From Magallana gigas (lineage: Eukaryota), in assembly GCF_963853765.1 (NCBI RefSeq), contig NC_088858.1:25110001-25174000 (forward strand): 64,000 nucleotides of DNA. Reading direction: 5' to 3'. Under the pieces are notes generated by a model. That model was not told the DNA's origin, searched no databases, and saw only the letters and a list, made by a program, of their open reading frames with translations. Position numbers and translations under genes: made by a program. This document shows, piece after piece, positions 1 through 62,708 of this stretch (position 1 is the first letter of the stretch; each line of letters starts with the position of its first letter).

Positions 1-572
1 CATTGGCTTATACGTGACCTAGGCATAATGCTAACATGCTAGCAGACGTTAAAGGTTTTTTAAAAGGTAAAAACTTTAACGTCTGCTATATAAGTTTAAG
101 GGACGGCGTTGTCAAGCGTTCTAAAGTACCTCAACGTTGTACATGTGTACATGCAAAAATATTATTAAAACAGTTGACGTATGTTTTTTTTTAAGTTAAT
201 GGTGAGCACAGCAAAGTTTGGAAAAAGTTACTACAACGTACATTTGCATTTAACTTACATGTCGAACGTTGACCTCAGGTGTATGGATATTTACATCACT
301 TGCATTACGATCTTGCAATTTGTTTAATGTGTTTGATAATTAAAATTGTTTATAAGAACATACTAAACGGATTCATAACTTTTAATGAAAAGTTTTTCAC
401 AGATAGATCTCCTCAAAATAAACGTTTTGAATGTTGTGAACAGAAGTCAATATCGCCAGAAATACAAATATAGGCGTGGGGTGATTTCTTTTATGTGTAC
501 GCTAAAGAAACTAGGATGCAAATTTTATGTTTATCAATTAACTAAATAATCAAGAACATAACTAAGTCATAC

Positions 573-3500
573 CTTTTTAGCAACAATGATGTCCTTTACT
601 TTGGATTTTATGTCGAGGCGTAAAAATTTGTCTACTTTGTGAATTTTTCTGTTAAAAAATTAAAATTTAAAATGTTTTTAAAAACAACAAATAATTATGT
701 ATTCATTTTTCTAGATTAAATACAATCCAAAGTATTTAAACTATCTTTCAAGTGTCATAATTTATCTAAAAAAAATTCCACAACTCCCCCCCCCCCCATT
801 TCCCGGATTTTTTTATGATGATTATTATTGTTAAAAACATAACATAAAATGTACTCACACTTTATTGACAAGACGTACTTCAGTTGCTGTGTTTGATTCA
901 ATGTCGTTAACATCTACAACATCAACTCTAGTTGTAAATGAATTTTAAACCAATTTTCAAATAACTAATTTTGCTTTCATATGACTTTATCTTAAAATTG
1001 GTGAATTTTTGTTTACTTTTAAAGAAAGCATAATGGCTAATAAAAGCGTAACGAAAATATTTGCTGCAACACAGGAAGACCATCGGCCACATCGCTTACC
1101 TGAACAAGGTGCCTTTTTACTAAGTAGTTGTGCTTGTTAGATTTAATGACAATATTGTGACAGCTTTATTTTACATTTATAGAGAAAAAGGAATTGCTGT
1201 GACGGCATACAACGTAATGGACAGATAAACAATTATATAGACATTCTACTGTGTTTTCCCATAAAATTCTGTGATTTTAAAGGCATCTATATGCAACAAC
1301 ATAATCACTGCGCATGTATTTACATGTACTTTACACAAGTAGTCCCCAAGCATTGATTTCTTTGTTATCAATATAAAAATATATTTCATACATATTGGTT
1401 AAACACCATGCATTACAAATATTCAACATTCAAGTCTTTTCTGTTGTAAAAAAAAAATTCAAGAGTCATTTTTAATGGATTATATTTTCAAGGCTCGTCT
1501 CAACAATCTATGTGATAACCAGTTTAAACCGGATTTAGAGAACAGTTGTTCTTGCTGTTACTTGTTTACTCCCTCCATGATCTGCAATTTATGCCGATTT
1601 ATTTAATAAAATAAATGGTTTCATCGACAAAGGAATGTAAATATAAGCATTAAATAATTTATTTTTGACGTCGTCGTGTCAATAAATGCCGTAAATTGAG
1701 CATTATTCAATTTGTCTGCTCGTAACGGAATTTATTGACACGACGACGTCAAAAATATATCAATTGATGCTACAGAGCGGAATGTGTCTGAAACTAGGTA
1801 CCACTAAATGCCTGATTATTCTATTACCCCTTATATATCGTTTATGATCTTACCTCCACTGGATTCGACTTCTATTTCTTTTTCACCAGGGACAGAATGT
1901 CTGATTAAACGGTAATGACTTTTAAATATGAGCATAATTTGTTAATTACTTTTTTCTTCAATTTTAATCTGAACATGTCTTCAATTAATTTAATATACAT
2001 ATTTAATACATTTAATATACATTTTATTTGATCAATCTTGTACATTGTATATATCAATTTAACTTTTCATACAGCAAAATTTTCAAATGCCCAAAATTCA
2101 TAAAAACTCTTACTTTACTTCCTGTTTCTTGTGTTTATTTTTGTTCTGAAGAATAACTTTGTCGTCTGCTTTGATAAATTCAATAACTCCATTGTTGGTG
2201 TAATGTAAAGTCTGGAAATATATGAAAAATTATTGCAATAATAATAAAATTAACAAGTTTTACATTTACATTGTCTTTTAAGTACACATCTACGAAACAA
2301 AATTCAAGATTTGTTTGAGCCGGAACAAGCTTACTCGTGTTTATCATATGCTAAAAAATCGTTTCATAAGAATTTGCCTTAAAAATGTTTTTACAGTAGT
2401 ACAATTCATATACGATACAACTTCCCGAAGGTACTTTATACTTTAAACTAAATCTTAATACTCATGTAACTACATGTACATGTAAGTAAATGTTAAATGG
2501 GTTTTTGTTTATACATTTAATACGACAAGCGTTTCCAATAAGCGTAAAAAAACCCAGGAAGATTCTTGACAAAGATGTTCTTAAACAAACACCCCTGGAT
2601 AGAAAAAAAGGATAAAATCAATATTCGACTATTAATAGAAGCAAACTTAAATGAAACTCCCAAACAATCAAAGCCACATTTGGATTTTTTTTTTACAAAT
2701 AAATACACTTTTCATTGAGTGGTAAAGATTTTGATATTGTCAGATTTACGACTAGATGTAAAACTGTTTGTTTACCTTGGCGTGTTTTCTATAGACTTGC
2801 CCGTCACTCTCGTGAAATTTATGCACTTTATAGCCCAAGGCAGTGTTCTGTATTGCATAACGATGATGTAAGTATCCTGCAAAACAAATTAGAAAAGTTT
2901 TAACTCAAGTGATACATCATACTACGTTTTATGGCAATTTATTGGTTCTTTGTGTAATCCAGTTTTCCTGTCTAGTGTCTTAATACATTCATTTTATTTA
3001 AAAGAGATAGATGGTCACTTCCAATTTCAATTTATAAACTAATTTACCTGCTTGAGAAGAACTTGCTAGGTATAAAAAGCATTTTGTTTTCTTTTCTGAA
3101 TTCTATCATACTTAGCACAGTAAGGCAGAATTGACAATTTGATAATGTAGAATCAATATTGTTGCTAAAATATATATCATTCCGGCTAAAAAAAATGAAG
3201 ATAGATTAATTTCGGAATTCTTTAGCGTTTGCTTATACTTCATAATATATCAATACTGTACGTACCCGAGTGGTCGTATTCCCAGTTGATAAAAGTCTGG
3301 CTACTTAAACTCTGAGGCTACAAAATATCGAAATCTTTGGCATTATAATGTCAGACCCGACTTACATTCCACCATTTTCCTTTTATTATCTCCACGGCGT
3401 TAGGATTATATTTCATTTTATACGATACTTTTTTATATGATATATAGTTTCAATGGAATAGAAATGCATATCAATCTTAAGAATTATTATAAATACATGA

Positions 3501-6500
3501 ACCAAGCTCTTTCTTGCAAATACAAAGTACTGAAGGTTTTAGACATGTGGGTTGTTTATTCTTTTTTTTAAATGTTACTTCATGAACAAACTTAAAGAAA
3601 ATGGAAAGAAAAAACTATCAAACCTTTCCTATGGCTGAAAACACACTGGCAAGGACCTTTTTAAGATTAATGACCTCATGATGATCTTCCTTGTGATGGC
3701 CTATATCTTTAATTAGACCATCTTCAGAAAGCTCAAACTCGAATCTGTAACCATAAAATAAATATTCAATTTAAAAAAAAACCTTCTAATTAACACAGTT
3801 TAATTTATATGCAGTATCTGATAAAAAGTAATGTTGCAAAATGTGACGTTTTAAGTAAAAATAGTTTAAACAGTAAAATTTACCCTTTTTCAAAGTTCCA
3901 TCCAGCTGGGTTGCTCTTAGCTATAGTGATAATGTAAATATATAACAAAATATATTAGAATATTTGTTTACTGCTTTGAAAATTTATGTCACATTAACTT
4001 TAAAATTCATGTATCATATTTTTGAAGATTTGTAGATAGATTTCATGCATCTTTAAAGAGTTACTTTTTCCACCAGCTGACTGTGTAAAGCTATCCAAAT
4101 GTATCTGACAGAGGAGCGACCCATTGTTTCTCACTAGTGGCAGGACACTGAACTATAAAGAAATGGAAATATTTTTAAACCAGGATCATATTTATGGGAT
4201 AGTTGACCTTTAAAGGGGCATGGTCACGATTTTTTCCCGATTTTAATGTTTACAACATGATTCAGTAAAGCATTTTAAATAGACAACCAAAAATTTTGAG
4301 TGTGATTTATTGAGATATAAGCGAGTTACAAAGCTTACAGTTCTTTGCTTTGTAAACAAAGCTTTTGTTCCCGTTTTAATTTTTGATGTGAAAATTCCTG
4401 TTTTTGACTTAAAATGAATGTGTTAAACGTTAGAAAACTGTTTATTTATGCTAAATTGAATAAAAATGGAAAAATCAGCCTCAAAAAGGTTCAAATAGGT
4501 TTTTTTTTACTGGTATACTGAACCTAACTACGTAAGCAAAAACAGGGCCTGAGCCTTGTTGTCATGAAAAAATAGGTGATCCCTTTATCTTCCTTGTAAC
4601 TCTTAGACTGAATCTCAAATTTAAGTTGATCAAAAGAAATGCATTCCTTAATCATTGCAAATATTAAAACCAGAAAAATAGAATTTGACCAAAACCGTGA
4701 CCATGCCCCTTTAATTAATTGAGTAAAAATCAAATTATGTCACCATTTGTATACTAGTTAAAACAATCCAGATCTAGGCACTTACTGAAAAGCAAAAATT
4801 AGTCGTGGTTCAAAATTCGTAGTTCATATTCGACAAAAAACCAGTCAGAATTGAATATAACGGTTAAAATTGTAATTATATCATTAATTTTTATGTACCA
4901 ATGCATCTCTAGTCTTTTAAGTTATGAATTATGAAATTCATATAAACTGTTCAATGAAAAATGACAATAACAAACTGTCAAATATCTCAAATATCCATAA
5001 AACGAAATACAAATTCAAAGCAGAGCAAACCGGACCTCTAAAAAGATAGAGGTAGGATCAGGTGCCATGGAGGAGTGAGCTTCCTCTGCTGACCGGTCAC
5101 ACCCGCCGTGTGCTATTTGTCGAAATCGGGGAAAAACAAAAAAAAACCGTTGACAATTAGGTGATTAATTATGGTCTAACAATCAGTATTAAAATTTGCT
5201 CACAACCAGTCTATGATCACTCTTCCGAACTAAACTTTAAAAAACGCCTTGCTATTTTGAGAATTAATTTCTTAATGACATATCTTAGACACAAAAATAC
5301 AAACAACACGTACCGTTTTCTTATTGTTGTATTTATTTTACAGATATTCGTGTGCTCCCATATTGATAACTTAAAATCTAATAAGATTTTTTACCAAATT
5401 TTGCAAATTAAAAAATGTTTCAAGGATTATAAACTTACAATTAAGAAGAATAGAATTTTTTTTAGAAAATCAAAAGCGCTATATAGTCGTAATTCCATTT
5501 TTAGATAAAATTAGTCTTGTAAAATAATTTCATCGATAAGAGCTTTGTAAAAATAGTTCAAATCATTAACCTCAAATATTTGGAATTTGAATACCATACT
5601 AGATGACTGTTATGAATTTATATCTAAAAATGTTGGTTTGTTCATTACCTAGTCTTTCAATGACCCGTTTTAAAACACAGTTTGTGTTCTGTCCTATTCA
5701 TAATCTTGTTAATTTTTGTAACTTCTAGTTCGAAAATGTATGCAAACTAAAGTTACAAAAATATGTATATATGAACACATAACGTGTCTGAACAATCTTT
5801 ATCTCATTAGAAAAAGAAATAAATAAAATCTCCATATTGTAGTTTGTAACATAAAAAACAAATCTACAACTTTAATTTATATAACTATTTTTTGATAATG
5901 TTACAAAATGTGTCGACTTCAAGATCGACGAACGTGTATCTGCATACGCATTTGGCAACGATATATAATAATAATGTTGTGTTATGCTAATATTTTGTTG
6001 CAATTTACATTTATGTATAGGTAAAAATCAAGAGCTGTGTTTACTGAATTATGTACAAATGCTACTGACTGTCTAGGAAAACACGGATTTCATAAACAAA
6101 AGGGGCTCAAGGGCTCAATTAACTATATTTTTTTTATAAAGCAATCAAACTAATATAGGGTTTGAGTGGATGTTTATGTATTATATCTTCTTTTTAGAAA
6201 AAAAATTGACCTTGAAGAAATGTCACCTTGCTGCAATAACGACCGGTTTTAAATTTCACATAACAGCTAAACAGCAAAGAACAATGTCGTGCCATACCCC
6301 ACTAGCAGTATTTAATACCCCTGCAAATTTAAAAAATGAGAAATGGGTCAATGACATTTGAAACTGAGTCTAATTATTCTTGTTGGTCGGCACATAAGTA
6401 GCATTATACAACTATATATTGTATAGGATCTCTTGTTCTCTCTATCTCTCTCACTTAAAAGGGGGTGGGGGTATTAGCATTGTTTAGTGATATGTAAATA

Positions 6501-9500
6501 GTATAGAAGTAATCTGATGGTATCCAACGAAGGCTTGCTGTTTTCAATGAAATCAATTTAAATCTACCTTGAGAGGGTGTCTTGTATTTCAAATAAATAA
6601 GCATTATTGCAACAATATAATTAAAATATGTACCCACTTTGAGCTTGTGCCCGAACCGCGTAAACAGATCAGACTCAAATTTGCATCTTTACAACTTTAC
6701 GAAGTACATGTACATGTATATCATCATAGACCCTGTATTAAATGATTTATTACAGATAATTTTTTTTTAAAATCTTTCTTAAGCGTTTATATTATCGTTA
6801 CACATATTTGTTTCTTTTTCACATGACATGTAGAATAATTGCAAAATATCTAAAGCTAGTCTAAAGTTGGTGATATTGGAATCCATCCCTATATTTTTGG
6901 GATAAATTCGGTTATACTACCAGAACCAGCCTTAACCTTAGTTGTGTTATCCTAATGATAATCGGATTAGCTTTTAATTTAGTCAAACAATCGGGTTTGG
7001 TGTTAGCAATTTATATCGGATTCAGCATCCTTTTTAATCACATTCTTCTTCCACGATGCTGGATCATCAAATGGAATTTCACCCAAACCCATCCATCCTA
7101 TTTCATTTGTGTGTTAGGATTGCATTACTTTGAACGACTGCCAGATTAAGTGAATTTTACCCACTTTGTGCTTGTATGTGATAGGGTATGGCGGTCGCCC
7201 GCTTGGACACGTGGGTTCTCTCCGGGTACTCCGGCTTCTTCCCACATCAATGACCCCCTCGCGCTAACATCCGTGCCAACGAGAGATATTGATATAAGTT
7301 GTAGAACTTGCTTATCAATCGTTGTAAAATAAATAAAGTTCAGTTAAAAAAAAAAGAAAAAAAAAGTGAATTTTACTATTGTCTTTTCATTTCAATGAAC
7401 TTGCTTACTTTGCAGCAAAATTTAAGATGTGTAGTTATTACCATGCACGTGGCTCATATTTGAATTTATTTATTTGGATTCATGTTTTAATAGCTAAAAG
7501 AAAATTTAATAATTATCATAAATTATTAAATTATGTTTACTTGGTAATAAGGAAAACAATCAAAAATTGTTCAACTTTGATTAGAAGGTAATTTTTCTTA
7601 AAGTACCAGTAATAGAGACAGCCAAGTTTTATTTACACCCTTGTCGAGTCTTTGATTAAAATCAGATTAATTTAGTTGCGCATTTGTGTAGTTTCGGTTC
7701 TGTTCTATTCTCCGTCCTGTGTTTTAGCAACACCCCTAACAATCTAAAAACCAAGAACCCGGAAGTTTAAAAAAGGCTTTACAAATAATCTCCAAGTTGA
7801 AATGGTTAATTACCCAACGTAAGTACAGGTATATAATGATTTTAATTTAGATTGCGGCTCAATTTCCCTAGTCTAAGGTTTTTTTTATCAAGTTTCGTTT
7901 TTAAAGAACCGATCACGCGTGCATATCAATTCGTTTAATTGGTAGACTTGGTGTCATTTGAAAAAAAAATTTAATAGTTTTTCAGAGAAAAACTACGAAG
8001 ATTTTCGAAAAACAATTTTTGAAAGCTTGACATACATAAAGTATTTCTAAAAGTTAGAAGTATTTGCTTAGCAAGTTTTTATTTAAGTTAAAACGTTATC
8101 TGAAGATTGAACTGTGTCAATTTTAATGAGCCTTGCAAGGAATCTAAAATAGGAATTTAAAACCGTTCATGGGTTCGATCTTTTGTTAGTGCGTGTCAGT
8201 AAATATTCAATACGGGGGAACGATATACGACAATTTGCACGCATACTTCATATACACATGCATATTTTTGAAACTTTGTGAAATTTAAAGTATAGTGTCT
8301 TTAAATCTATCACCTTAATAAGTGCGAGTATATTTAGGTAGCAAAATTTGTTTTTGTTAATGCAATGGTGCCATCTTCTTGGTCCTTATGAACTAAAACG
8401 AAGTATTTTTTTCATCACGTTTTCTTACCTTTCTATATAAATCATCGGTATAAAGTGTGTGAAAGTAAGTAAACCATCGTTTATTGCTATTCTGTACAAT
8501 ACGTCGGAAGTAGAGCCCAGAATAAAATCCGAGGAATATAATCATAATATATATGATTTATGAGTTGACAGTGCAATATTTGCATGCATAATATTTGTAA
8601 AAAACATTCCTCAAACTCTGCTAATTAATACGTTTTATTTCTTGTTAAAAGTCCCAACAATTTGTATATGCCATACTAATTTACATTAAATATGTAATCT
8701 TTGTCTGAAAAAAAAACTTTAACTCTGCTAAATGATACGTTTTATTTAGTGTTGAAAGACACAGGAATTTGTATATGCACACACTAATTAAAATCATGTA
8801 CGTAATCTTTGTCTGAAAGAAACTTTAACTATGTTAAAATAAAATGTTTGATTTCTTGTTAAAATACCGAGGATTTAATATGTACAATGATAATAATTAT
8901 GCTCAACGCACAAACTGATTCCATGATACTAGACAGATCCAAATTTTTACTCAAAAGCAGATCATAAAAATTGATTTATTTTAATTAGCAGAGAAATTAA
9001 TAAATGATGTAAAAATCAAAAACATGGCTTTTCTCCTGCCAGATATGTTTTTGCAATTACCATTTTCAAAATGTACATTTAGAAATTCATGTCGATTATT
9101 ACACGTTTAACGTAAATTTGATAAGATAGTATATGTTATCATTAAAATTTTTGAAATCGTTCAATTTTCTTTGCATTTCCACACTTTCAGCACTTATAAA
9201 ATACATATAATATAGTTTTTTATTCAATGCTATTTGCATTAAATCTTGTCTTGCTTCACATTTATTTTACAGAAACAAAACCAAAAATATCTCTTTGGTC
9301 ATGTATGGAAACCTTATACAATTATCTTTTTTTTTATTTCAGTAAACTTTGCTCCCAATTCACAGACTTATGCAATGTACGCCGAATGATTCTTTATTTG
9401 ACTTTTTATTTTTCCATTTGGTATACAGGGTGTTGTTCATAACCGAGCAGACTACTTAAATCTGAAAGTAGAACATTCTGGTTTATCCTAATTCCGTTCA

Positions 9501-10547
9501 TTGTTGGGTGACTTCTGATCGATTTTCTTTTGAATTAAAGAATGGATCACTCAGTAGATGTAGATATTGTCTCCTTTTAAATTGTAAAATGAATATAAGC
9601 TCGAAACACATTTACATAATATTTACATTTGATGATCGTGATCGTGAAAAAGATTTTGAATTTATTAGTTCAATAAAACAAATGGGAAAATCAGGAACAA
9701 ATTTAAATAAGTATTAAGCAGCAATACTTTTGATATATAGTAGATGTAAAATTTATTGGTAACTGATAATTTTTAAATAATCTTCCTAAAAAGCTGCTCT
9801 TAAAAGAGCATGTATCTAGAGATCACTATAATACAAGTAAAACACTGAACGCTTTCCAAGAACCCTTGTTTCGTTTTCAGTAACGTTTGAGTATGCAAGA
9901 GGCGGGACATATGTTTTCTATGGTATGAATGATAAAACGAGGCACAATGCAGAATTGCGAAATTTTAAGTAAATTCCAAACCCAGCTAATCCCCTTACCC
10001 CAACAATCGGCTTGATTTGCTGTAACACTGGTACGAAAAAACGGACATTAATTGAGATGTCCAAAAAGGAAAACAGTTTCACTGCGTATTGCTTTCGAAT
10101 CTATTGTCCTTTAAGGGTTTGATACTTGTTTTAAAAAATCGTTCTTAAAACTGATGTTCAAAGCTGTAAACGATATTCGTATTTATTTCTACAACCAGTA
10201 GTTACAATAAAGTCAACTTCCAGAGCAAAAAAAAAAAAAGATAAAGTAGTATTTGATATCCAGATGATAATTTCAATACCCGGTGTGCATTACACTTCGA
10301 GTTTGAACGTTCAATTTTTGCACTGTCTACAAATACACTTGCTATATACAATACAAAATGATAATTGTAAAGAATATTTTACCTTGACAATGGTAAGCAC
10401 TTGGAAGTCCGCTAGTACCACTGAGTCGGCTTTGTATTCATAATGATACTCGTAACCGATTTCAAAATTATATGCACAGGTCTCTCTACGCAAGAAAAGT
10501 AGCCAAAATCCACACAGAGTAAAAAGATAAACAAAACGTCCCATCAT
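573..10547 (-). CDS. Gene A (5' part; continues off the left edge): secreted or membrane giant protein with vitellogenin/LLT-like N-terminal domain; paralog of gene C
   Basis: Phase-consistent GT-AG exon chain: 10383-10544/10547 (MGRFVYLFTLCGFWLLFLRRETCAYNFEIGYEYHYEY, signal peptide), 4065-4152, 3884-3920, 3624-3744 (FEFELSEDGLIKDIGHHKEDHHEVINLKKVLASVFSA), 3266-3317, 2776-2876, 2114-2211, 1854-1900, 859-913, 573-648. The last four match gene C exons in length and sequence. Confidence 0.85.
1661..1756. repeat. Near-perfect inverted repeat (32-bp arms, 32-bp spacer); foldback MITE-like, in a gene A intron
   Basis: atttttgacgtcgtcgtgtcaataaatgccgt (1661-1692) versus acggaatttattgacacgacgacgtcaaaaat (1725-1756), 1 mismatch. 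Confidence 0.8.
4214..4710. mobile_element. Non-autonomous DNA transposon (MITE), Kolobok-like
   Basis: TIRs AGGGGCATGGTCACG and CGTGACCATGCCCCT flanked by TTAA on both sides (4210-4213, 4711-4714); purine-purine termini with a TTAA TSD fit Kolobok. Confidence 0.8.
5020..5130. repeat. Remnant of an interspersed retroelement-like repeat
   Basis: GC-rich island gaggtaggatcaggtgccatggaggagtgagcttcctctgctgaccggtcacacccgccgtg in AT-rich intron; resembles oyster repeats from memory, not verified. Confidence 0.35.
7161..7363 (+). mobile_element. 5'-truncated SINE/LINE-type retroposon with poly-A tail and 13-bp TSD
   Basis: TSD aagtgaattttac at 7148-7160 and 7364-7376; internal gggttctctccgggtactccggcttcttcccaca SINE-like motif; aataaa followed by an A-rich tail. 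Confidence 0.85.
8617..8885. repeat. Degenerate tandem repeat, about 105-110-bp unit, about 2.5 copies
   Basis: Recurring ctctgctaa..atacgttt..atttgtatatgc..gtaatctttgtctgaaa..aaactttaact. Confidence 0.7.
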
Positions 10548-10835
10548 GATTACAAGAGTCCCATTCTGCTACACATCACTTTGGCGACCTGGATACACCA
10601 GGAAGTGCAAAGACCATGCCTGTTAGAATATGCGCATTAAAACCAGTTTTCTATGATTGACGTTTACTGCTTTCATGCGTTGTGCCTTTAAATGGATCAT
10701 AAACTAGGCAGAGGTCGCTCTTTTTTGGACAAGCAGGAAGATTAAATGTGAATTATAATATGTGAAAGAATTCTTGCCTACAGAGGTGTAAATGTGCTAC
10801 TAATGGTGTGCAAAGACTTAATATAGGACTACAGG
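10548..10835. promoter_or_regulatory. Probable bidirectional promoter between genes A and B
   Basis: Divergent ATGs at 10547 (minus) and 10836 (plus), each starting a signal peptide; the 288-bp spacer has a TATA-like aattataatat near 10751. Transcription starts are not known. Confidence 0.6.
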
Positions 10836-13800
10836 ATGGCAGCTGTTCACTTTGCTTTGTCTGTACTTTCTGTTTGTGTGTTTTTGACTTTCGGGTTTGG
10901 CAATGAGATTTTCTCAGAAGAGTACAAAATAGAAGAGGACATGCATGGGAGAGAACTGGTGGTTGCAAGCCGTGGACGGATCCGTAAAACAATCGACTTA
11001 AATGATCAGAGTATCGTAGCTGTGAGCAATAATTTAAATCATTTAGTAAAAACTTATATTCATATTTTTATTCATCAATAAAAAAAGTCATTTACAAATG
11101 TATTTTCTTGACTTTCGTTTTGAAAACGGTCTGACATTGTTTAAATATTTTAGCCTTCGATGTACCTATAATGCTAGTGATATGAATTTTTAATGAATGA
11201 CTAGCAAACGCTAGCATACTAAATGAAATATGCAAATATTATTACACTAGACTCATATTTTTCTGCAGAAAACGATGTGTAAAGATAATACTATAAAGGT
11301 CTCCTTGGCATCAAACATGCATGAAGATGAGTGGAAAATAGGCGACCTTGTTGTAGGAAGTTCTGCCTTGGGCTGCCGTTTGTCCTTCACAAACTCAGAT
11401 GGAGGAGTGTTTGGAAAAATTACTTATTTAAAGACCCAACGAAAGGGCCTTTTATATATAACTGTAGAAAATGCTAGGTAATCCATAATTATGCAGCGAT
11501 TTTATCAATCTTTAAAATAATTAAAACAATCGTATTATATAGCTGTTTAAAAATATGATTGCTAAGTCTATATTTATTTTCCGATTTTTTTTTTCAAAAG
11601 TCCTCTTGATGTTCTAGAAGAGGCCAATATATCACTTCATGTAAAACATCGAAGAACAAAACGCAGCAACACAAATTTTCTCTCAAACATCTTGGATAGC
11701 ATTAATTGGGAAGAAACATCAAACACGACCATACTGTTCAACAAAGACAAAAAACCTTTCTCTATTCTAAAGATGACGAACAACCCGACATTAGATGTAG
11801 GAATACTTGACTCCATAAATACAAGTCCGAACGCAGAGACGCATTTTAACTTCACCTGTACTTCTTGCTTTGGAAAAGTTGAGTTAGCTTATCATCTGTA
11901 AGTATATGTTGAAATCTTACCGTATAAGATGATAAAAAAAAAGAATAAAAATACGGTAATCTGGTCACGCAGTAGCTATAGCTTTTTGTTTAGATATTTT
12001 TTTTTAATGCAATCAATATTGCTTTATTAAATAAGAGCATTATAAAATAAAGAATATTCGTATACATTGTAAGTTACAATATGCCTTCATTTCGATTACA
12101 TAATACTGGTATGTAATATTTAATTGATATATACATGTAATTTGTTAACAATTTGAACAGGGAAATGAGAATAAAGAGAGATGTCGATACAAACAAACCA
12201 ATTGTGAAATCCTACCTCTCTCAAGTGGAAGGCGAGACCACAAACTACTATCAGTTTTCGATCCAATCACACAAAGAACTGACTCTTCTAGTTGACGAGA
12301 AAGTGATGGAAACGGATCCTTTGTTTCTTCATCCAATCACGTTAGCGACATTCAAACGATTTCCACCTTTACAACTTACAATCCGTGTCCAATCGAGCAC
12401 GTACTTAACTGCCAGCATCATTACACATTCTTCTAAAGAGTTTAAGTTTGGGGATACTTTCCAAACGTCAGGGAAGTTTGTTGTGTGTGAGTATTAATTC
12501 AGGTGTTGTTATAACTGTGTCTTTAAAGAATAGTTTTGGGGTTGTTTTTCACCAAATATTAAAATACGATTAGCTTTCATTTTAATTTAAAAAAATAATT
12601 ATTTATCTGAATTAAGAAATCATTTTAGCACTTTGATATAAGTCTTTCTACTTATGATGCATTTTTAAAATAGAAAAAAATGAATGAGTTGAAATCCTAA
12701 TTGAGCATTTTCCCTATTTTTCATTTGTTTGTCAGGAAATTTTTTGCTTTTTTTATTTGAAAAAATACGTCGTATATACCTTTACAGTTCAATAGATATC
12801 TTTATGCCAATTTATTGATCTTGAAGATTACCAATGAAGACTCTTTAACAAATAATCTCCATAAACTGCAGTTTGTTGATTTTTTCCTTGAAAATCAACT
12901 CAATCGTCATTGACAAAATATTGTCATTTTCATTAATGACGAATCAAAACTTACTACAAATAAACTACATCACAAACACAGATTATATGAAAATTTAAAC
13001 GTAATAAAATGACTTATTGAACAGGTACTCCGGGGTCTACCTTGTTAGTTAGAAGCATATGAAAAATGTGGAGATCACCAGGTTAAATGTATACAAAAAT
13101 AGTAAACAACAATGGCAAGGTGATTTCCCTTAATATAAACATATAACACTTATTGTGGTATATACAAAGTTCCGACATACATCCAATGCCTATAAGATTC
13201 CCGCCATCCATAAAAACTTAAACTTTTATTTTTTAAGAGTTAACATCATAGTTTACTTTAACTTTGATATTACAATATGTTTTAGCTAATCAGCATAGTC
13301 AACATAATGGATTACCAACAAATCATATTTCTACATATGATTGGCAGACAAACCACGTTCAAAACGATGCCGTTGAGTCCAATGATTTGTTTTCAATGAG
13401 TTTCAACATTTCCCAACAGGTACAAATGTTCCTTTTTTTAATTATAAATCTACGATCTATTGAATTTATGCAATTTGACAATTTTTGTTTGTTTGACAGA
13501 TTAGTTTAAAACCTTTCATTGAATGGGCAGAACGAGACATTAGACTTGATTTTGGATCACCCTTTACAATAAGGTAAATGAAAAAACCAGTTTGTTTTAT
13601 ATCCGTACAATATTCTTTGATGAAACAAAATAATTTATTTATCTTTCACCAAATTATATTCATATAAATGACATATACATATACTACAATGAGACACCTC
13701 TTTTGTAGGTTACAGCAAGAACTTAATTTAAAGTCAACAGTTTCTGATGTTTCACTGTGTTCCAACGTAGAGTCTCGTTTAACGAGCGCTTTCTCGTCAG

Positions 13801-16800
13801 AGAGAAATTCATTAGTTGTTGATGCTTTTGGTATTCCTATATGGTAAACAAATATCTTTTCTCTTATTAGTACTTCTAATATTTGTAAAGTTTGGTTATA
13901 ACAAATTAACCCAGATAATGATCCATTGTCATTTCGCCACATTCTTTGTTTATTGACATATTTTGTGTTATATCATGTTTTGGTATGCTTAGGGGTGATG
14001 TATCGACACTGACTATGTCTCAGATTTCGAGAGCAGCATTGGATCAACAAACTTTATCCAGAAAATGTCAAGCCAACTGTTTTGAATCTCAGTCCCTTTC
14101 AACATCAATTGATGCATGCGGTGCGCCAGGTAGTCTTGTGCTTCGAAATTCGTCGACATTTTCTTCGTAAGTATTAGACGTTCATTACATTACTGTAACA
14201 TTACATTACATTACATTACATTACTAGTGTATCATTAATGTCTAATTGATACCTAGCTTGCAAGTTTCTTGGCATACTAATCGATATGGACCAAAAAAGT
14301 TGTGTCTTATGTTGACGATTATTATAGGTCATTTGAAAGCAAATTAAAAAAAATAAAGAAAACAATGTTTAAAAAATCGATTATTTTAGTTTGCGGAAGT
14401 TATTTGGAGACACCATCATATTTCTGTCGGAAGAACCAAGTGAATCTTCGTGGTGTGGTCATCCTGGAAATCCATGCTTGGACTGTTCAAATTACATTCA
14501 AGATGACAATGTTTGCTCTGACAGATATGTTACCCCAGAATTAGCAGAAGTGTTAACTAAATTAGCAAAATTTGTTGAAGCGGAATGGCCAGATCGAAAG
14601 CTCTTGATTTTGGAAGCATGGGATGAAGCTACATCAGCACATCCACTTGGTAGTCATGGTAACCAGTCCTTGTTTTACACCGGAAGAGCAGCAAGAGTTG
14701 CATTGAGTAAAAACTTAACATCAAAAGAACCAGAGACTGATCAAAATACATTCCAGAGGTTTACCCAATTACTGCAATGCTCTGATGCTGATTTCTTTGA
14801 CACATACATGAGAAATTCCGTTCTGGACATTTGTGTTTCTGATGAATCGGCCGCTTTTTTCACGAACACCGAAAACAATAGAAAGAAAAGAGCTATTAAA
14901 TCAAACAACATTGTAAAAACAAATACTTGGAGACAAGAGAAAGATAAATATGATGAACAAATTTCTGGTTTAGGTTTGTGTATATATAAAATTTATTTTT
15001 GTGAAATACATTTAGAAGTACACCCTTCCAGCACACTTCTGTATGATCAGTCCGTTATATAAGATTGCCAATTTCTCTTGCAGTAAGTGTTTCGTCAAGT
15101 GGATCTACCCTAAAAGACTATTTTGGAGGAGGAAAGTATTATCCATCAGGAAAAACTGCGATAGATGTTTGTGGAGAAGCTGAAGATACATATAGTATTG
15201 AAAATCTGGATAAAATGCAAAGGTATTTTTAATTTATTTAAAACGTTAAAACACCACGGTTTTTATTTAACAACACTTTTATATTTTTTCTAATGTGTTT
15301 AAAAATATTGTATTTAGATTGCAATATCATTGTAGTCTTCCAAATAGGTATATAACAGCCAGTTTTGATATTGCTTCGCATTTTAATTGTTTAAAAGACA
15401 AATTCAGTATCCACTGGAAAATGTTGCATTCGAGGCCGAAGGAGCTAAGACCTCCTCATGTGGAGCACCAACGAGAGGCTGTAATCAATGTACTCGTTAC
15501 GTGGATGTAGATAATCCATGGGATTGGTGCCTAACGAGGACTATGACCACAAGGGCTGCAACAAGACTTCATCGCTTAGCCAGACTTGTAGAAGAGGAAA
15601 CAAAGTCAGGTCGGAAATTATTTCTAAAATCTCTATTTTTCGGGGCATTCACGTAGTACACAGCAAAACACAATAACAAACCGATATATTACTTTTACTT
15701 TAAGGCGGTTCAAGTTTAAGTTTGGCGGATGAAGAGTTAGGAATTTGTCGATCAGCTATGGTGATGTACGAAACCCTTGAGACGTGTATAGAAAAAATGC
15801 CGAGCTCTACTACTAATAAAGAATCAAAGTGTGTAAGTAATTGATTTGAAGAATCAAACAAAGAGTATGATTATTTTTCTTTATTTAAGAGAATTGCAGT
15901 TTTTATAAATAACATAGTTCAATTTTTTTTCTTCGAATTTATGTCTTTTTAAGGAAGAAGTCTTTTCTGATTTTCGACTTGTCAAACGTAAATTTCATTA
16001 ATTGTTCATTAAATCAAGAATCAAGAAAATTAAGAAAAGGAAATTAAAATAGTATATTTTTCTTTCTTTTTTACTATCATACAACTTGGCATAGAAAAAG
16101 TAATCAATGTTTAGAATCTAACAAGGTCTATATTTTTGGCGTAATATTGGCGTAGGAAAGTATCGCATGTTTCGCAATTCAGAATTGCTGCAGATAACTG
16201 AGTCTGTTTTGGCATTTTAAAAACAATAACTTTAATGTTGGATTTTTTTACTTATGTGAACTAATGATATGATACTTGGGTTTCAGAAAATTTGATTTGC
16301 CTATCAAATTACATTTTAATAAGCTTTTTAAAGCGCCCATTCTACACTTTGATTTTTATGAAATAATCACTAAAATAAGATTTTCTTTCTTATTAAATGG
16401 TCAATACATTAGCTTTTCTGTCAATTTATTTCTTTGTATAAAGTCTTCATATAAAACAATAATCTTCAAAATTTTAGAAAACTAGAGGAAATGCAGGCTA
16501 ATAAATATCAATTTCAGTATAAATATTTGTTCCAATTCAGTAGTATAAGCTGATAGACATTCTGATGTTCTATCATTTCATTGAAAAATAGAATGTTCAA
16601 ATCTTAAATAAAGATCTACAGAACTACAAAGAGCTACACTTATTTTTATCATCCTTTACGTTGAGGAAAAAGGTAGTGACTTTGACCTGACTTTTATGCA
16701 AAAACAAAAAGGTAAAATTTGATTAATCTGATAGAATCATTTGGTAATATGATCTGTTTGACTGTGTCAAAATTTCATGTATTTCTTATTATAAAAAGTA

Positions 16801-19800
16801 TGTTTGATAACAAGAAGACTCCTTCCTTAAATTAAATGTGAATGCAAAGCTCAGAAGAGATTTTCGTCATTCTGTTTAAAAATGTAAATCATATAATTAA
16901 TACTAATTAAAAGTTTTTTATGCCTCCTATAAAACCTTATTCTTTTTCCTTTGTATATAATCATTCATTTATGTTAGTACGATTGCATGATGGACGCCCG
17001 TTGCTGTTACGGAAACGATAATATTGGCTGCATAAGAAATGAATGTTCCGGAGATGAGAGTTCTAGTGTGTGGACATCAATAGCTTGTTCAGGTATTCAG
17101 TCGTTTCAATAAATACTACCTTGAAAAAAATTGGACAGAAGAACGTTACAACTTCACTTTCACTGTATTTTGCAGCTGTGCTTTTTTTTTGGGGGGGGGG
17201 GGTGAATATTAACAATATAGTTTGAAAATTTGGATACTGACTATGTTTTCGACAAGTATATATTTCTTTTCTTTTTACTTTTTATACAGAACTAAATCCT
17301 TTTTTAAGTGATGTTACCATACCAACAACACCAGGTATATTTTAGACTTTTTATCCCTTTAAAGCATCCCTTAGATATACTTAAGCAGTAAATGTCGTAC
17401 ATATAATTTCATTTGAATTTAATTTCTAGCATGTAACGATGGTGATAGTTCCAAGATGATCCTGTATGGAAATGTATGCGGAGGTAATATTATAATATAC
17501 GATGACTTTTTGATATATGCAATTGTTGATGATGACATTTTTTAGATTAAATAGCGGCATTATCTTTTATTACTTTACAGAACCAGTTTAAAGACAAAAA
17601 TGACTGTAAACAATTGATAATTGATTAGATAATTCCAAAAAATAATTATTTATTGAAAGCATTTGAGAGTAACCTATCGATACTTGGTTAATAAGATACG
17701 TAATATACCCTACGTTAAAAAAAGTTTTCATACATTTTTGTTTTAAGAAAATCGAATTTTAATAGGTCAGTTGGTTCAATTACTTATGCATCATTTATTT
17801 CAATAGGCGATCCTTGCCAATTTTTTACTGGAAAAGAGTATCACCTTTTGTTAAAAGTGGTTCTAATATTCGAAGTCTGTTCTGGCAAATGGGATCAGAC
17901 AAAAATCGACCAAGACATTCGGAATCTGAATACCGGAGAAAGTAATTTGATGACTTTTTTGTCTTCTTGCATGGGTAGTGACAACACAATTCTAAAACTT
18001 CACTACCCTGTTCCAAATGACCCAACAATCGGTAAGTTTTATTTAGATGACTAAATTGCATATCATACAATCTGTAGCCCTTAAGATAAAGTGTGCGTAA
18101 GTCTAAGACATTTTTTAAGTAGGACTTGATACATTCTTCGACTTAAGTCCGCAACTAGGAAGTGCTTATATGAAGCTAGAACAATTTACACAAAACTTAG
18201 ACAGCCTTCGAGAACGACTGTTATTTGTCAAAACAAACAAAAAACAAGAATGGACAAACTGCATCAACCTCAATCGATTGCTTAGTGATATACACAAAGG
18301 TTAGGTACATCTACAATACACTCATTTCACATTGAATTTTGTGTATGCATAGGCGTCGGAACCGGGGGGTGGGGGTGGGGTTCAGTTAGACATAAACCAT
18401 AATGATATTTTTTTTTGTTTTGGGGGTTTGTTTTTGCCTATCAAGATTTCTGACAAGCCCCCCCCCCCTTTTTTAATTTGCTTCCGACGCCACTGCTACA
18501 TGTATGTGCCATAATTAATAAGGTTAAGTACATCTACAATATACCTATGTCACCTTCAATTTTGTGTATATACCATTTAAATGACTTCTAAACCCCCCCC
18601 CCCCCCCACCAACCAATCCAATATCAAAGATACTTACCAGTTGTATCTATATTTAAATTGTATATTAACTTAAATAATTATCACCGATACCATCGAAGTC
18701 GATTAGGAAAATGAACACTTCAGTAATGACTTTTTAACATAAGAATAATGTTGGCTTTATGTTACGGACGAAGTACGTAGGTTCTAAGATTCAGCGTAAG
18801 TTTAAAGTATGACCCTACTTATGTCAAAATCTTGGCATGTTTTGTGTAATGAGCCCCAGACTGACAAAACACTGATTTGTTGTGCACAATTAACTTATTG
18901 AATGTTTAAGTATTTTTAGTCGCTATGTATATTTTTCAATCAGTATCCATTTATTATGCTGTTGCTCATAAATAAGGTTTAAAGATAAAAGTTTAAAAAA
19001 GATTTGATACACAATATTTAAAAGAATGCATGTAAATTACAGGAATAGGGTTTAGCCTTCGTTCATCGGAAAAGAAAGATCTGCTGTTAAAAATTTTACC
19101 AAACCTAGACTATGACCTCATAATGGAAGGCAAGCAATCCTTAACAAAAGAACAAGCACTTTACTTGTATGATGTAAGTTCTGTTATTTCAAATTTAAAA
19201 CAATAGATGTTTGGTATCGTTATTGCTTACTGTTATTCCAATTACTTTATTTTTGCGTTCTATGTCCATTTTTAGAAAACTATGAGGCGATACTACATAA
19301 AGACTATGAACAGCATTGTCCCATTTAAATCATTTATTCACTTGGACACTGCTACAAAAATTGCATTAGTTAATGCAAACTATAGAGGAGAGTTTCCATC
19401 GAAACTAAGGAAAAGGTTTAACACCGCTGTACAGGGTGGTCAGTGGGCTAATGCTGCTAATATTTATCTAAGTCATCCAGATTACAAGAGAAACAAATGT
19501 GATACCACTGGCTATGGGAGTATTTGTACCAGAATGACATGGAATGCGGAGCAGTTTAATAAACTTGCCAAAAAACAAGGTTGTATGATGTTATTATTGT
19601 AACAAATTTTTTGAGTGTTTAATTAAGAATGTATGTATTTACAAAAAACTGATTAACAATTGTTTTTTATATTAGTGAAGGTTTTAAAAAGAGAAAGTTC
19701 TTCGGCTCTTCAAAATGTTGGAAGGTATATACCTTGCATTTCATGTGGATAGTAAAGAGATTTGCTTTTGTAGAAAAAAACATACATGTTATATATTCAA

Positions 19801-22558
19801 AATCCTTCTTTTATTATTGACATTACAGATCGCTCAAATTAACTCTAACTCCTGGAGTGTCTCTGAGCACAAGTACACTTGCTAATCTGGCTGTCATCGC
19901 AGGATTTGATCACGTGACTAAGGAATCGGATCACATCGTGGCAAGTGTTCGACCAGCTAAAGGTGTAAATAGCGTTTTAGTAAACTATCCAAATGTGAAT
20001 ATGCACGAAACCGAACCCCCTGTCGATAACATGGTTGAGTATGAAATTCCAGCAGAGGCAGACTATAGCCTGACTTATCCTTTACTTCTGGATGGATTTA
20101 ATGACTCTATAAGACTTTCGGACTGTTACAAAATAGCTGATTTAAAATCTAATAAATTTAGGTATTTTAGATTCGATCCAACACTTTTAGAATGTATGGA
20201 GGAAGCAAGTAGTCACTACACTGAGTGTATTGCAGTAGAAAGCGGTTCTGGATATCGAGTCAGATCTGAAAACAATAGGAACATTGATAGTAGGCATTCT
20301 GAGGAGAAATGGCGTTTTTCAGTTGGTCAGGCTGTGGAAATTGGTAAAGGCAAAACTCTAGAAGAACTAAAGCTTCTCGGATTAACAGTTATAAGATCAT
20401 GCGTTCAGAATTTGATCCGCAAGAGGTTGATACTTGGAATTGGTGCGCACGAAGACAAACTTTATGTGGACGTACGGGAATCTTCACTAGCAGCGGAGTT
20501 TGTTAAAGTTTGGGAGGATGGATCATCTGACTTGTACACGTATCTTAAAGACATAGAAAACGGCTTCAAAAATGGTAACTAGAGAACATTTTCATAATTT
20601 ACTTCAAAACAAATTCACGAAAGAAAATTTTATTTAAGATATGGGTTTTGTCATTTGGTCATTTAATTGTGTATCCTGTCTAGGAGGTGCTTTTATTGAA
20701 CCAACAAACAAAACACGTGCATGTCAACCTTCACCGCTTGGAAAGAACTCATACTACATCAAATATTCTAATGAAGGGTAAGTGATCGCAAAGTTTTAGT
20801 AATACACTTTTATGAAAATATTTTTTAGAATTGTGTATCATTTAAACATTGACTTATAGAAGATAAAACAATACGCCATTGTCAAAGGCAAAATTTATTT
20901 CTTTTAGATCATGTAGTGCAGATACAGGGTTTTCTTCACTGTGTTCATCAACAAAATCTGAAAGACAAAAAGCTGCCGCAGATCTACTGAAACGTCTAGA
21001 TGAAGTGATAGGAAACGGACCATTAGATAAAGCATCACTTAGAGAAAAAGTCAACAATTGTTTAGTGAATCTGTGCGGAGGATGCATTGGCAAAGGTACA
21101 ATTCATAATCTGGAAAATGCAATTGATTTACAAATCTTTTTTATGAGTTTTGTAAACCAAATACAGACAGAAGGAGATGTAAGTAAAACATAAATCATAC
21201 TGTTATCAAGAACCTAATATTTCATATTTTTCTATTATAAAGGAAAAATCTGGAGGGATAAGACGATAGCGTGTTTTGACTTCGTTACCTACTTTTTGGA
21301 TGGGTCTTCTGTACCATTCCCAAATTTAAGAAATTCTGGAGCATTCTTCAATACAGAGAATACTAAATCTGAAGTTCATTCGTTGGCTTGTCATGATGGA
21401 AGTGCCTGCATTGAAAATGTTCAGCTTCATTCTTTACTTCGTACGAATATTTAACGTTTTAAAATAATAATAAAGATATTTTTTTTTATTTTTAATCCAC
21501 GCACACAAAGATTGTTGAACAACATTTACAAACACCATTCCTAGTTAAACAAATGTCATAATGTTTCTCGCTCTAATTGAATATTTAGTGAAACATTTTT
21601 TATGAATGAAAGTCACAGTTTAATCTATTTCTAAAAACAGCATTGAGAACTTTACTCTAACATGGATAATACTCAAACGATGAATGTTACACATGATATT
21701 GTTATCAAGAAGTATGCAAAGCTGATGCCTGACGAAAAAGTCAATTTTTCAGAGAAAATGATCATGGTAATGATACTATTCCAAAATAAACTAAAAGAGA
21801 TTAGAAATATTTATCATAGGAGCTCCGTCATGCTATAAGGATACAAATATTGTGATACTGATTTTTTTTATTTCAGAAGAAACATTGACGACCAAGTACA
21901 AACCAGACTCATCCCAAACTAACGAAGAACTAGTTTACGATCCAATGGACAATCCCTCCCCATTGCTCAATATTTTAGAACAAGAAATGGCCATGCGTGT
22001 ATCTGGGAACGTTTCAGTTTATATTGAAAACAATGGAGATATCTCAAGGTTGAATCAAATATTAAAGGTATGTAGAATATTAGTCAAAAATGAAAAGTTG
22101 TAAATACCTTGATTGTTTGTAAGTGATGCAAATCAATCGAGAAACGTGCAAACGTTATTAACTTAAAAAATTAAAGCTGAAAAATACACAATCATATAAG
22201 TACGCACAAACTCGCATACCATACACATATAGACAGGTGCATGACGATAAACAGAGCACTTTTAAAACGATTATTATGTTTTCAGATTCTTATGGTCTTC
22301 AACACAAAGGTCACCAATGTTCATTATCATTTGACAAATTCTGTGAGGAAAAACCAAGTTGTGGGTGCTGTTCAACGTAAAATAGAAAGATGGGCGACGT
22401 CGACGTGTCCGGACATCTCCCGTGTAACGGTCGCTCCTTTCACGGTCTCTGAAATATCTCACGAAAGACACAAACGAAGTATAGATAACAGCCAAGACAG
22501 GAATTTCGCAAAGCAACTAAGAAACAATTGGGAATTGGAGTGGCTTTCAAAAACTTAA
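10836..22558 (+). CDS. Gene B: secreted multidomain protein of about 1734 aa (signal peptide, N-terminal region, Hedge 1, split Hedge 2 with inserted GH24-like lysozyme, M15A-like peptidase domain, Cys-rich C-terminus); no HINT, no TM
   Basis: 25 GT-AG exons with consistent phases, total 5205 nt: 10836-11021, 11269-11477, 11601-11897, 12161-12486, 13286-13419, 13500-13573, 13709-13843, 13993-14166, 14390-14967, 15084-15222, 15398-15609, 15705-15832, 16978-17092, 17290-17334, 17430-17483, 17807-18031, 19043-19173, 19276-19579, 19676-19724, 19829-20574, 20684-20777, 20908-21095, 21243-21440, 21877-22067, 22286-22558 (TAA). Confidence 0.88.
14080..14850 (+). other. Hedge (Hedgehog N-terminal signalling, M15-fold) domain 1 of gene B
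   Basis: CGAPGSLVLRNSSTFSSLRKLFGDTIIFLSEE...DRYVTPELAEVLTKLAKFVEAEWPDRKLLILEAWDE...SLFYTGRA aligns by eye with Shh [76 protein letters not shown]. Confidence 0.9.
14183..14223. repeat. (CATTA)n microsatellite
   Basis: cattacattactgtaacattacattacattacattacatta in a gene B intron. Confidence 0.85.
15084..15609 (+). other. Hedge domain 2 of gene B, N-terminal half
   Basis: YPSGKTAIDVCGEA...NVAFEAEG-(Cys-rich insert)-TRTMTTRAATRLHRLARLVEEE matches the Hedgehog IFKDEE..DRLMTxRCKxKLNxLA segment, then breaks off at a phase-1 donor. Confidence 0.75.
17807..19579 (+). other. Phage/T4-type (GH24-like) lysozyme domain of gene B over exons 17807-18031, 19043-19173 and 19276-19579
   Basis: LKLHYPVPNDPTIG|IGFSL...LDYDLIMEGKQSLTKEQALYLYD and ALVNANYRG...AVQGGQWANAANIYL...RMTWNAEQF resemble T4 lysozyme LRLKIYKDTEGYYTIGIG and ALINMVF..MLQQKRWDEAAVNL. 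Confidence 0.7.
18352..18491. mobile_element. Small MITE-like element with G-tract and C-tract arms
   Basis: ggcgtcggaa..G-tract versus C-tract..ttccgacgcc inverted ends, lying between two diverged copies of about 50 bp of ggtta(g/a)gtacatctacaata..attttgtgtat. Confidence 0.55.
19676..19952 (+). other. Hedge domain 2 of gene B, C-terminal half
   Basis: VKVLKRESSSALQNVGR|SLKLTL...LANLAVIAGFDHVTKESDHIVASVR versus Shh [45 protein letters not shown]. Confidence 0.8.
20110..20480 (+). other. Peptidase M15A / M15_3 (YcbK-like) domain of gene B, Zn ligands substituted
   Basis: LSDCYKIADL..FRFDPTLLECMEEA..IAVESGSGYR..N..RFSVGQAVEI..LGIGAHEDKLYVDVR follows the M15A pattern LS.hF..D..L..L..R..SGYR..N..S.H..G.A.D..GIG.Y..HvD.R. 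Confidence 0.65.
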
Positions 22559-62541: not shown

Positions 62542-62621
62542 CTAAAGATAAACATCAAAAAGAATAAAAAATAAATATTTACTTTAACAAATCAAATGTA
62601 CAACTTAAATTTACATTAAAC

Positions 62622-62625
<4 letters not shown>

Positions 62626-62704
<79 letters not shown>
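62626..62704. repeat. (TA)n microsatellite
   Basis: About 39 TA units, read directly. Confidence 0.97.

Positions 62705-62708
<4 letters not shown>

Follow-up and report, generated by a model that had tools for sequence, protein, structure and literature searches.

We analysed a 64,000-nt stretch of the Magallana gigas genome (564 Mb), positions 25110001-25174000 of the forward strand of NC_088858.1 (G000:C6:25110001-25174000). This stretch is hereafter called the window, and all coordinates are counted from its first base, with negative values lying to its left. Flanks of 60 kb on the left and 20 kb on the right were taken in as well. The locus has a GC content of ~30%, and its genes contain introns. 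Two genes, here named A and B, lie on opposite strands and face outward, with 288 bp between their start codons. A sequence-only reading of this DNA had proposed that they form a head-to-head pair on a shared promoter of about 290 bp, and that their products may be co-expressed extracellular partners. The gene starts are arranged as follows.

10383..10547, minus strand: coding exon 1 of gene A, with its ATG at 10547, an in-frame stop just upstream and a GT donor just below 10383
10548..10835, no strand: ATG-to-ATG interval of 288 bp, containing both 5' untranslated regions and the bidirectional promoter core
10836..11021, plus strand: coding exon 1 of gene B, with its ATG at 10836, an in-frame stop just upstream and a GT donor after 11021

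Exon 1 of gene A encodes a hydrophobic, signal-like N-terminus and a conserved Y-x-Y-x-Y motif, and is 82% identical to exon 1 of its tandem paralog, gene C. Exon 1 of gene B encodes a signal-like N-terminus with a conserved ...IDLD... motif and equals residues 1-62 of the transcript-derived protein P0088. The maximum Kyte-Doolittle hydrophobicity over 11 residues was 2.19 for the N-terminus of A and 2.68 for that of B, and both proteins presumably carry signal peptides. The RNA runs that cover the locus are labelled as oyster. Unstranded RNA contigs from two studies (X1 and X10) spanned exactly 10383-11021 without a break. Both contained the splice 11021>11269 (GT..AG), which was seen in four runs overall, and past 10383 their next sequence mapped to 4123-4152. 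This loose end is exon 2 of gene A, indicating that A intron 1 is 6.2 kb long.

The strand of the RNA was resolved with stranded raw reads from one study (X22 and X23), calibrated by the spliced B reads, all of which share a single orientation. Minus-strand RNA, from gene A, extended to at least 10605-10628, and plus-strand RNA, from gene B, started at or before 10678 and reached full depth by 10813, so the two 5' ends lie no more than ~50 bp apart. A k-mer assembler joined the 5' ends of A and B in two libraries, indicating that the ends probably overlap. The head-to-head arrangement is thus confirmed by open reading frames, RNA contigs and stranded reads, with opposite strands, outward transcription and starts less than 1 kb apart, as in bidirectional pairs. 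The compact shared promoter of the sequence-only reading also holds, although the "shared promoter of ~290 bp" is really a back-to-back start region within the 288-bp interval. RNA of both genes was present in both raw-read runs and was higher in X22 than in X23 in each case (n = 2 runs, one study), which is consistent with the likely co-regulation of A and B.

Two minor signals were observed on the A side of the interval. Five minus-strand reads of run X22 matched rightwards from position 10412 and carried ~78 nt of unrelated sequence on their left. This sequence was not found between -60 kb and +84 kb around the window, and no canonical donor lies at 10412; the reads could represent an allelic insertion or a distant exon. 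In A intron 1 (9300-10300, minus strand), X22 contained minus-strand RNA at 1-5x compared with 2.5x for exon 1, and RNA from this region in X1 and X10 was about ten times lower than the exon contig. It could be unspliced RNA or an unannotated transcript.

Divergent pairs this close are common in animal genomes, and such a pair alone is therefore not beyond chance. We found the same arrangement in four other mollusc genomes. Because 5' errors are frequent in public gene models, both first exons were located anew at each locus. The criteria were sequence similarity, a start codon, a signal-like peptide, the conserved motif and a GT donor in the corresponding position.

Saccostrea echinata (L011): A-like ATG at 7225, minus strand; B-like ATG at 7547, plus strand; gap 321 bp
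Pecten maximus (L014): A-like ATG at 8308, minus strand; B-like ATG at 8833, plus strand; gap 524 bp
Sinanodonta woodiana (L012): A-like ATG at 11860, minus strand; B-like ATG at 13063, plus strand; gap 1202 bp
Haliotis rubra (L027): A-like ATG at 9802, minus strand; B-like ATG at 10001, plus strand; gap 198 bp

The layout with first exon facing first exon thus occurs in five genomes of two mollusc classes, with gaps of 198-1202 bp. Its recurrence in four further genomes places the pairing beyond chance, and the arrangement, old and unlikely to be accidental, predates the bivalve-gastropod split. The sequence-only reading had staked itself on adjacency being conserved in other genomes, and on this point the pair passed strongly.

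The association was also found in other orientations. The M. gigas genome contains a second pair, composed of B' and A':

C3:35192265-35233800 (L017-L021): B' on the plus strand, compact at ~6.7 kb, and A' on the plus strand, starting 2.4 kb after the B' stop

In Haliotis asinina, a 5123-aa neighbour with Vitellogenin, FN3 and Big_9 domains lies upstream of the B-type gene on the same strand, and in Batillaria attramentaria the B-type gene is flanked by giants on both sides. The A/B linkage thus outlasts changes of orientation. The M. gigas genome has only two B loci, and they adjoin the three closest A-type genes; no B neighbour accompanies the more distant A-like genes elsewhere in this genome. 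In Saccostrea (L029), the signs of an A' gene downstream of B' were limited to two weak matches. Exon 1 of A' is closer to the A-like first exons of Pecten and Sinanodonta than to those of A or C.

The interval between A and B is not a CpG island (observed/expected ratio of 0.45). It aligned poorly with the corresponding interval of S. echinata apart from two words, both found by this alignment and by motif scanning.

10597..10605, plus strand: ACCAGGAAG, an ETS-like word
10787..10793, plus strand: TGTAAAT (TATAAAT in Saccostrea), a TATA-like word ~45 bp before the B ATG

The word ACCAGGAAG is the longest intergenic word common to the two pairs and lies at the same distance (about 50-57 bp) from the A ATG in both. 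Neither word was found at matching positions in the Pecten or Sinanodonta intervals, and ACCAGGAAG is therefore a lead only. Because the reads have reached full depth already by 10813, the TATA-like word is probably not the main determinant of the B start site. Duplication of the promoter between A and C was rejected. The region upstream of C showed no similarity to the A/B interval and contained no B-like exon, and the DNA similarity between A and C ends inside exon 1, indicating that the promoter was not duplicated with the gene.

The exon structure of gene B was determined to its stop codon, and its features in the window are listed below.

10836..22558, plus strand: coding span of gene B, 25 exons, encoding a secreted protein of 1736 aa, with the stop at 22558
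10836-11021, 11269-11475, 11599-11897, 12161-12486, 13286-13415, 13496-13571, 13707-13842, 13992-14166, 14390-14971 and 15082-15222, plus strand: B exons 1-10, in-frame and joined by RNA
14390..14971, plus strand: exon 9 with the first Hedge domain (HH_signal; Pfam PF01085, 4.1e-10)
15704..19725, plus strand: exons 12-19, an insert of ~330 residues with the two halves of the second Hedge domain on either side
19042-19578, plus strand: distal part of the insert, lysozyme/pesticin-like by features only (Atlas features PF00959/PF16754, score 0.90)

Exons 11-25 were mapped from P0088 and are accurate to within a few bases. P0088, a protein of 1736 aa with 313 member sequences, is near-identical to window B and confirms a full-length B mRNA. 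PF01085 matched P0088 twice, and B has two to three Hedge domains of the LAS fold. They are internal, beginning near residue 520, with a CG-H-PG motif at their start. The best solved match of the first Hedge domain was the N-terminal domain of Drosophila Hedgehog in its Ihog complex (2ibg), and its matches in the Protein Data Bank (PDB) were the N-terminal domains of Hh and Shh. The presence of Hedge domains in B, as proposed from the letters alone, is thus borne out by both the Pfam and the PDB match. In the alignment with 2ibg, the zinc-ligand positions of the first Hedge domain were replaced: the His of ...SLHYEGRA... by Phe, and the Asp, whose position we take from vertebrate Shh numbering, by Arg. 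No Hint family match was found in full-length P0088, P0002 and P0005-7, leaving these proteins with no recognisable Hint/Hog domain, and VWA, cadherin and transmembrane (TM) segments gave no matches in B.

The second Hedge domain is split, with its last third (profile positions 112-159) ~340 residues further on. The intervening insert was found in oysters only and is absent from all non-oyster relatives. Its distal, lysozyme-like part had no match in Pfam (E up to 10), PHROG or the PDB (phmmer), and a single-sequence AlphaFold2 (AF2) model of the insert had a predicted local distance difference test (pLDDT) score of 39, unusable for fold comparison. The lysozyme label comes from features alone and is therefore a lead, not a finding. 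By eye, the position of the catalytic Glu of T4 lysozyme is occupied by Glu in Saccostrea and by another residue in this oyster. Throughout the B family two dibasic, furin-type sites are retained, one near residue 150 (11599-11897) and the other near residue 1710 (22286-22558). The C-terminal site lies 26-30 residues before the C-terminus and is retained even in the echinoderm clade, and the peptide after it is conserved, ~26 aa long, and ends in ...NWE-x-[ED]-W-[LI]. These sites suggest that B may be cut into fragments by furin-type convertases.

B belongs to a rare family: when exon 9 was searched exhaustively with HMMER against 1.84 billion representatives, only 83 proteins were returned. 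The long relatives of B formed two clades, one of molluscs (100/100 support) and one of ~950-aa proteins that includes a protein from the starfish Asterias amurensis. One mollusc subclade contains this oyster, Saccostrea, Pecten, Ylistrum and H. asinina; the other contains Sinanodonta, a second Saccostrea gene, H. rubra and Batillaria, and the cephalopods stand apart. Paired loci occur in both subclades. The named members returned by the search with P0002, all of them from oysters, were without exception recorded as "uncharacterized protein". Window B is nearer to Saccostrea P0086 (70% identity) than to P0002 (65%), and the orthology of A-like and B-like genes across species is partly resolved. 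Saccostrea has two B copies (P0002/P0084 and P0086/P0085) with 72% mutual identity, compared to one in this oyster; the 10 kb downstream of the Saccostrea P0002 locus showed no tandem copy of the C type. The ~950-aa clade (P0014, P0016, P0025, P0027 and others, with L025 for Asterias amurensis) consists of Hedge-only proteins that share the C-terminal domain of B. A further protein, P0032 (2253 aa), has a Hedge domain alongside Trypsin and PLAT.

Gene A extends from 10547 down to ~-28900, about 39 kb in all, of which ~29 kb lies beyond the left end of the window. Its in-window exons were assigned from the RNA contig end, from collinear similarity to C and to the Saccostrea neighbour, and from open reading frames in the flank.

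1..10382, minus strand: remaining in-window part of gene A, with intron 1 at 4153-10382, exon 2 at ~4060-4152, exon 3 at ~3621-3764 and further small exons
25796..64000, minus strand: gene C, the tandem paralog of A, collinear with it at 65-85% amino acid identity per exon and convergent with B
47365..47979, minus strand: C exon with an M23 (LytM)-like region (Atlas features Peptidase_M23, score 0.93, 95/100 hits)

The product of gene A is a type-I membrane giant with a start resembling Vitellogenin_N and large lipid transfer (LLT) modules, an M23-like region, PAN, about twenty FN3-like repeats, a Big_9/cadherin-like domain, EGF and TM. Pfam matches on the C exons were PAN, FN3 (PF00041, 6.7e-8) and Big_9/Cadherin_4, and both A and C end in an EGF-like module, a TM segment and a cytoplasmic tail. 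Exon 1 of C lies outside the window at ~68538-68702, and no B-like partner was found at the 5' end of C. The gene upstream of C, also outside the window (~74300-80200, minus strand, L009-L010), encodes a protein similar to mitochondrial translation initiation factor IF-2. It lies on the same strand as C, which therefore has no divergent partner. An RKKR|S site lies directly before the Big_9/cadherin-like domain in both C (26900-26960, minus strand) and A (~-27640), and the ectodomain might be cleaved from its membrane stub there.

The LLT assignment of A, also made in the sequence-only reading, was supported indirectly. With exons scanned singly, one A exon (L008:8333-8725) matched PF01347 (Vitellogenin_N) at E=0.032 and 13 bits, below the cut-off of 24, over profile positions 318-406. 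The next conserved exon of the paralog A' (L019:1375-1743) matched over positions 474-524 at 4.2e-8 and 32.7 bits, over the cut-off, and contains an ALGNAG motif that is likewise found in A. Furthermore, public records of the neighbours' products in Sinanodonta and H. asinina list PF01347, and the A exon is 35% identical to the Sinanodonta exon (E 6e-16). These matches point indirectly to an LLT-type gene. DUF1943 and vWD had no Pfam match on the scanned A and C exons, and the LLT signal in A was confined to the N-terminal part of that module. A profile of the single LLT exon (A, C and Sinanodonta) gave no match among solved structures, and Atlas features were uninformative for that exon.

The peptidoglycan-hydrolase labels fared less well. 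The M23-like exon of C is 72% identical to the matching A exon. It had no Pfam match (PF01551), and its AF2 model from a two-sequence alignment reached a pLDDT of 47, too poor for use. The alignment, judged by eye, has one His only at the expected H-x-H place. The name M23 in A and C thus reflects language-model feature similarity only. The same applies to the lysozyme in B, as neither label was matched by sequence in Pfam, PHROG or the PDB.

Compared with the bidirectional promoter pairs of other animals, A and B share the opposite strands, starts less than 1 kb apart, outward transcription and conservation across distant species, and the ETS-like word in their interval is of a kind common in vertebrate bidirectional promoters. 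However, the interval is not a CpG island, the products are large extracellular proteins rather than housekeeping ones, and the linkage persists after changes of orientation, which promoter sharing does not explain. B resembles Hedgehog (Hh) ligands in its PF01085 match, its closest solved structure, its secretion and the CG-x-PG at the Hedge start. It differs from them in lacking Hint/Hog, in bearing two to three internal Hedge-like domains within 1736 aa, in its replaced zinc ligands, and in its extra N- and C-terminal domains and, in oysters, the large insert.

To our knowledge, Hedge outside true Hedgehog proteins is known mainly from hedgling in sponges and cnidarians. Hedgling is a Hedge-only giant with one N-terminal Hedge domain, VWA, cadherin and EGF repeats and a TM segment (Burglin 2008, PMC2362128). 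B is likewise a large extracellular protein with Hedge and without Hog; here, however, the Hedge protein and the repeat-rich TM giant are encoded by two adjacent genes, with a different set of other domains. In Lophohog the Hog domain is retained and the N-terminus is different (PMC9695228, PMC5103448). B is, like it, a lophotrochozoan-restricted Hedgehog relative; an identification of B as Lophohog was rejected, as Lophohog keeps Hog and not Hedge, and B the reverse.

Two known partnerships of Hedge proteins bear on the relation between A and B. Hedge domains bind the FN3 repeats of the membrane proteins Ihog and Cdo, and Drosophila Hedgehog is carried on lipophorin. As with Ihog/Boi and Cdo/Boc, the locus encodes a Hedge ligand together with a type-I membrane protein bearing FN3, and the best match of B was the Hh chain of 2ibg. 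However, no Ig domains were seen in A, which is some tenfold larger and also contains LLT, PAN and M23-like parts, and binding is predicted here by analogy. With the large lipid transfer proteins (vitellogenin, apolipophorin, apoB and MTP), A-type proteins share the Vitellogenin_N region at the N-terminus, whereas A is membrane-anchored, the LLT part is a small fraction of it, and neither DUF1943 nor vWD was found. Transport of Hedgehog on lipophorin differs in that B has no lipid-adding module, which leaves that analogy without a mechanistic footing. The Hedge domain on an FN3 co-receptor is the closer precedent.

The explanation that we favour, with slightly better than even confidence, is that A and B are a true divergent pair with one compact bidirectional promoter, ancient in molluscs, and that their products serve a joint extracellular process. 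The shared promoter would switch both genes on in the same cells, and the two proteins would then act in one extracellular process, for which cell signalling or adhesion, reproduction, or recognition of the bacterial cell wall are candidates. In its simplest form, B or its fragments would bind the A ectodomain, for which Hedge domains on the FN3 repeats of Ihog/Cdo provide the precedent. Gene order is poorly conserved between mollusc classes, and pairing from abalone to oyster is therefore a strong pointer to shared regulation or function. A more elaborate version, which we offer tentatively and regard as rather improbable in its entirety, sees the A giants and multi-Hedge B proteins as a hitherto unrecognised receptor-ligand (or display) system of molluscs, independent of the Hedgehog pathway. 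They would form a co-regulated cassette older than the bivalve-gastropod split and duplicated as a unit, with convertase-released B fragments binding the FN3/PAN ectodomain of A. A complex prediction of the C PAN exon and the C FN3 exon with the first Hedge domain of B scored 0.02, which neither supports nor opposes binding.

Several observations weigh against the divergent pair with joint function. The head-to-head orientation is not universal, as it differs at the C3 locus of the same genome, in H. asinina and in Batillaria. The A-like gene of H. rubra was seen as exon 1 only, in a 10-kb flank, and is absent from the public gene list. The Ylistrum balloti B-like gene (P0019, L030:119-4177, ATG 3995) lies head-to-head, at 122 bp, with a 270-aa PGRP/Amidase_2 gene, and no A-like gene was seen in its flank. 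There is also no A-like gene within 10 kb in Octopus bimaculoides, nor beside the starfish relative. The support for the mollusc subclades is moderate (81-95), and B' was not placed. The read depth of A is 5-10 times below that of B in X22 and X23 (two runs, a single study), and the twin gene C is driven by a promoter of its own that lacks a B partner. Finally, the binding and partnership of A and B are argued by analogy.

Among the alternatives, cis-regulatory constraint alone has a fair amount in its favour, and we consider it possible, if not probable, that overlapping promoters which cannot be broken apart have kept together two genes whose proteins do not cooperate. The 5' ends of A and B abut or overlap, and neighbouring genes are in general better retained when they form a close divergent pair. 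The analogical basis of A-B binding, the 5-10 fold difference in read depth and the fact that C works without a B partner at its promoter also fit this explanation. However, adjacency survives where the promoter is no longer shared, as in the C3 tandem with its 2.4-kb gap, in H. asinina and in Batillaria, and promoter overlap cannot explain this. Both ancient paralog pairs, moreover, have kept their linkage.

A reasonable though unlikely alternative is that the two genes form a two-part immune system that recognises or attacks the bacterial cell wall, built from inactivated peptidoglycan-hydrolase folds and an LLT module. The Hedge domain shares the LAS fold with M23 and M15 peptidases, and LLT modules bind microbial lipids in other invertebrates. 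The feature-level matches to the lysozyme/pesticin and M23 families, the placement of a lysozyme-like piece inside the second Hedge domain by oysters, the PGRP/Amidase_2 neighbour in Ylistrum and the fast evolution of B (65-70% identity between oyster genera) are all consistent with such a role. However, the lysozyme and M23 parts lack profile or solved-structure matches, the zinc ligands of the first Hedge domain are lost, and the sole published expression note concerns testis rather than an immune context. In that study, the S. echinata B co-ortholog LOC133197027 is among the genes up-regulated in pre-spawn testis; the A ortholog is unmentioned in a table restricted by Gene Ontology class, and the neighbouring LOC identifiers are not listed in the supplements. 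We found no paper describing the A/B pair or either family.

The carrier model raised in the sequence-only reading, in which A is a lipophorin-like LLT particle transporting lipid-modified fragments of B, now appears very improbable. The Vitellogenin_N/LLT region of A-type proteins, the CG-H-PG motif at the start of the B Hedge domains and the conserved dibasic sites would suit it. However, the EGF, TM and cytoplasmic tail of A and C make them membrane proteins, and of the LLT module A showed just the N-terminal portion, with no DUF1943 or vWD found. B has no Hint/Hog domain to add cholesterol, and because its Hedge domains sit inside the protein and do not follow the signal peptide directly, N-terminal palmitoylation of the Hedgehog type is not expected. 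With A anchored in the membrane and B devoid of a lipid-adding module, the lipophorin analogy fits poorly. Errors at the 5' end are frequent in the public models of related loci (P0002 and P0007 truncated, Sinanodonta B exon 1 mis-called), but the idea that the closeness is coincidental or an artefact of annotation or assembly, with first exons that are not real gene starts, is already refuted by the RNA joints, the stranded reads and the exon map of the transcript-derived full-length P0088, which fix both first exons, and by the same arrangement in independent assemblies of four other species.

The interpretation given in the sequence-only reading is thus partly supported, and the divergent pair with a joint extracellular role is the form of it that we retain. 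B represents a rare bilaterian family of Hedge-only proteins with a fixed genomic partner, an uncharacterised membrane giant with a lipoprotein-like N-terminus. The pairing offers a concrete, testable way into two families whose sole annotation at present is "uncharacterized protein", and it bears on the use of the Hedge domain before or beside Hedgehog signalling. The analysis also exposes systematic 5' mis-annotation of A- and B-type genes in public mollusc annotations. The public models of Saccostrea P0002 and Pecten P0007 lack their first exons. In Sinanodonta, the annotated "exon 1" of B overlaps an A-like exon on the opposite strand, and the A-like model starts mid-exon.

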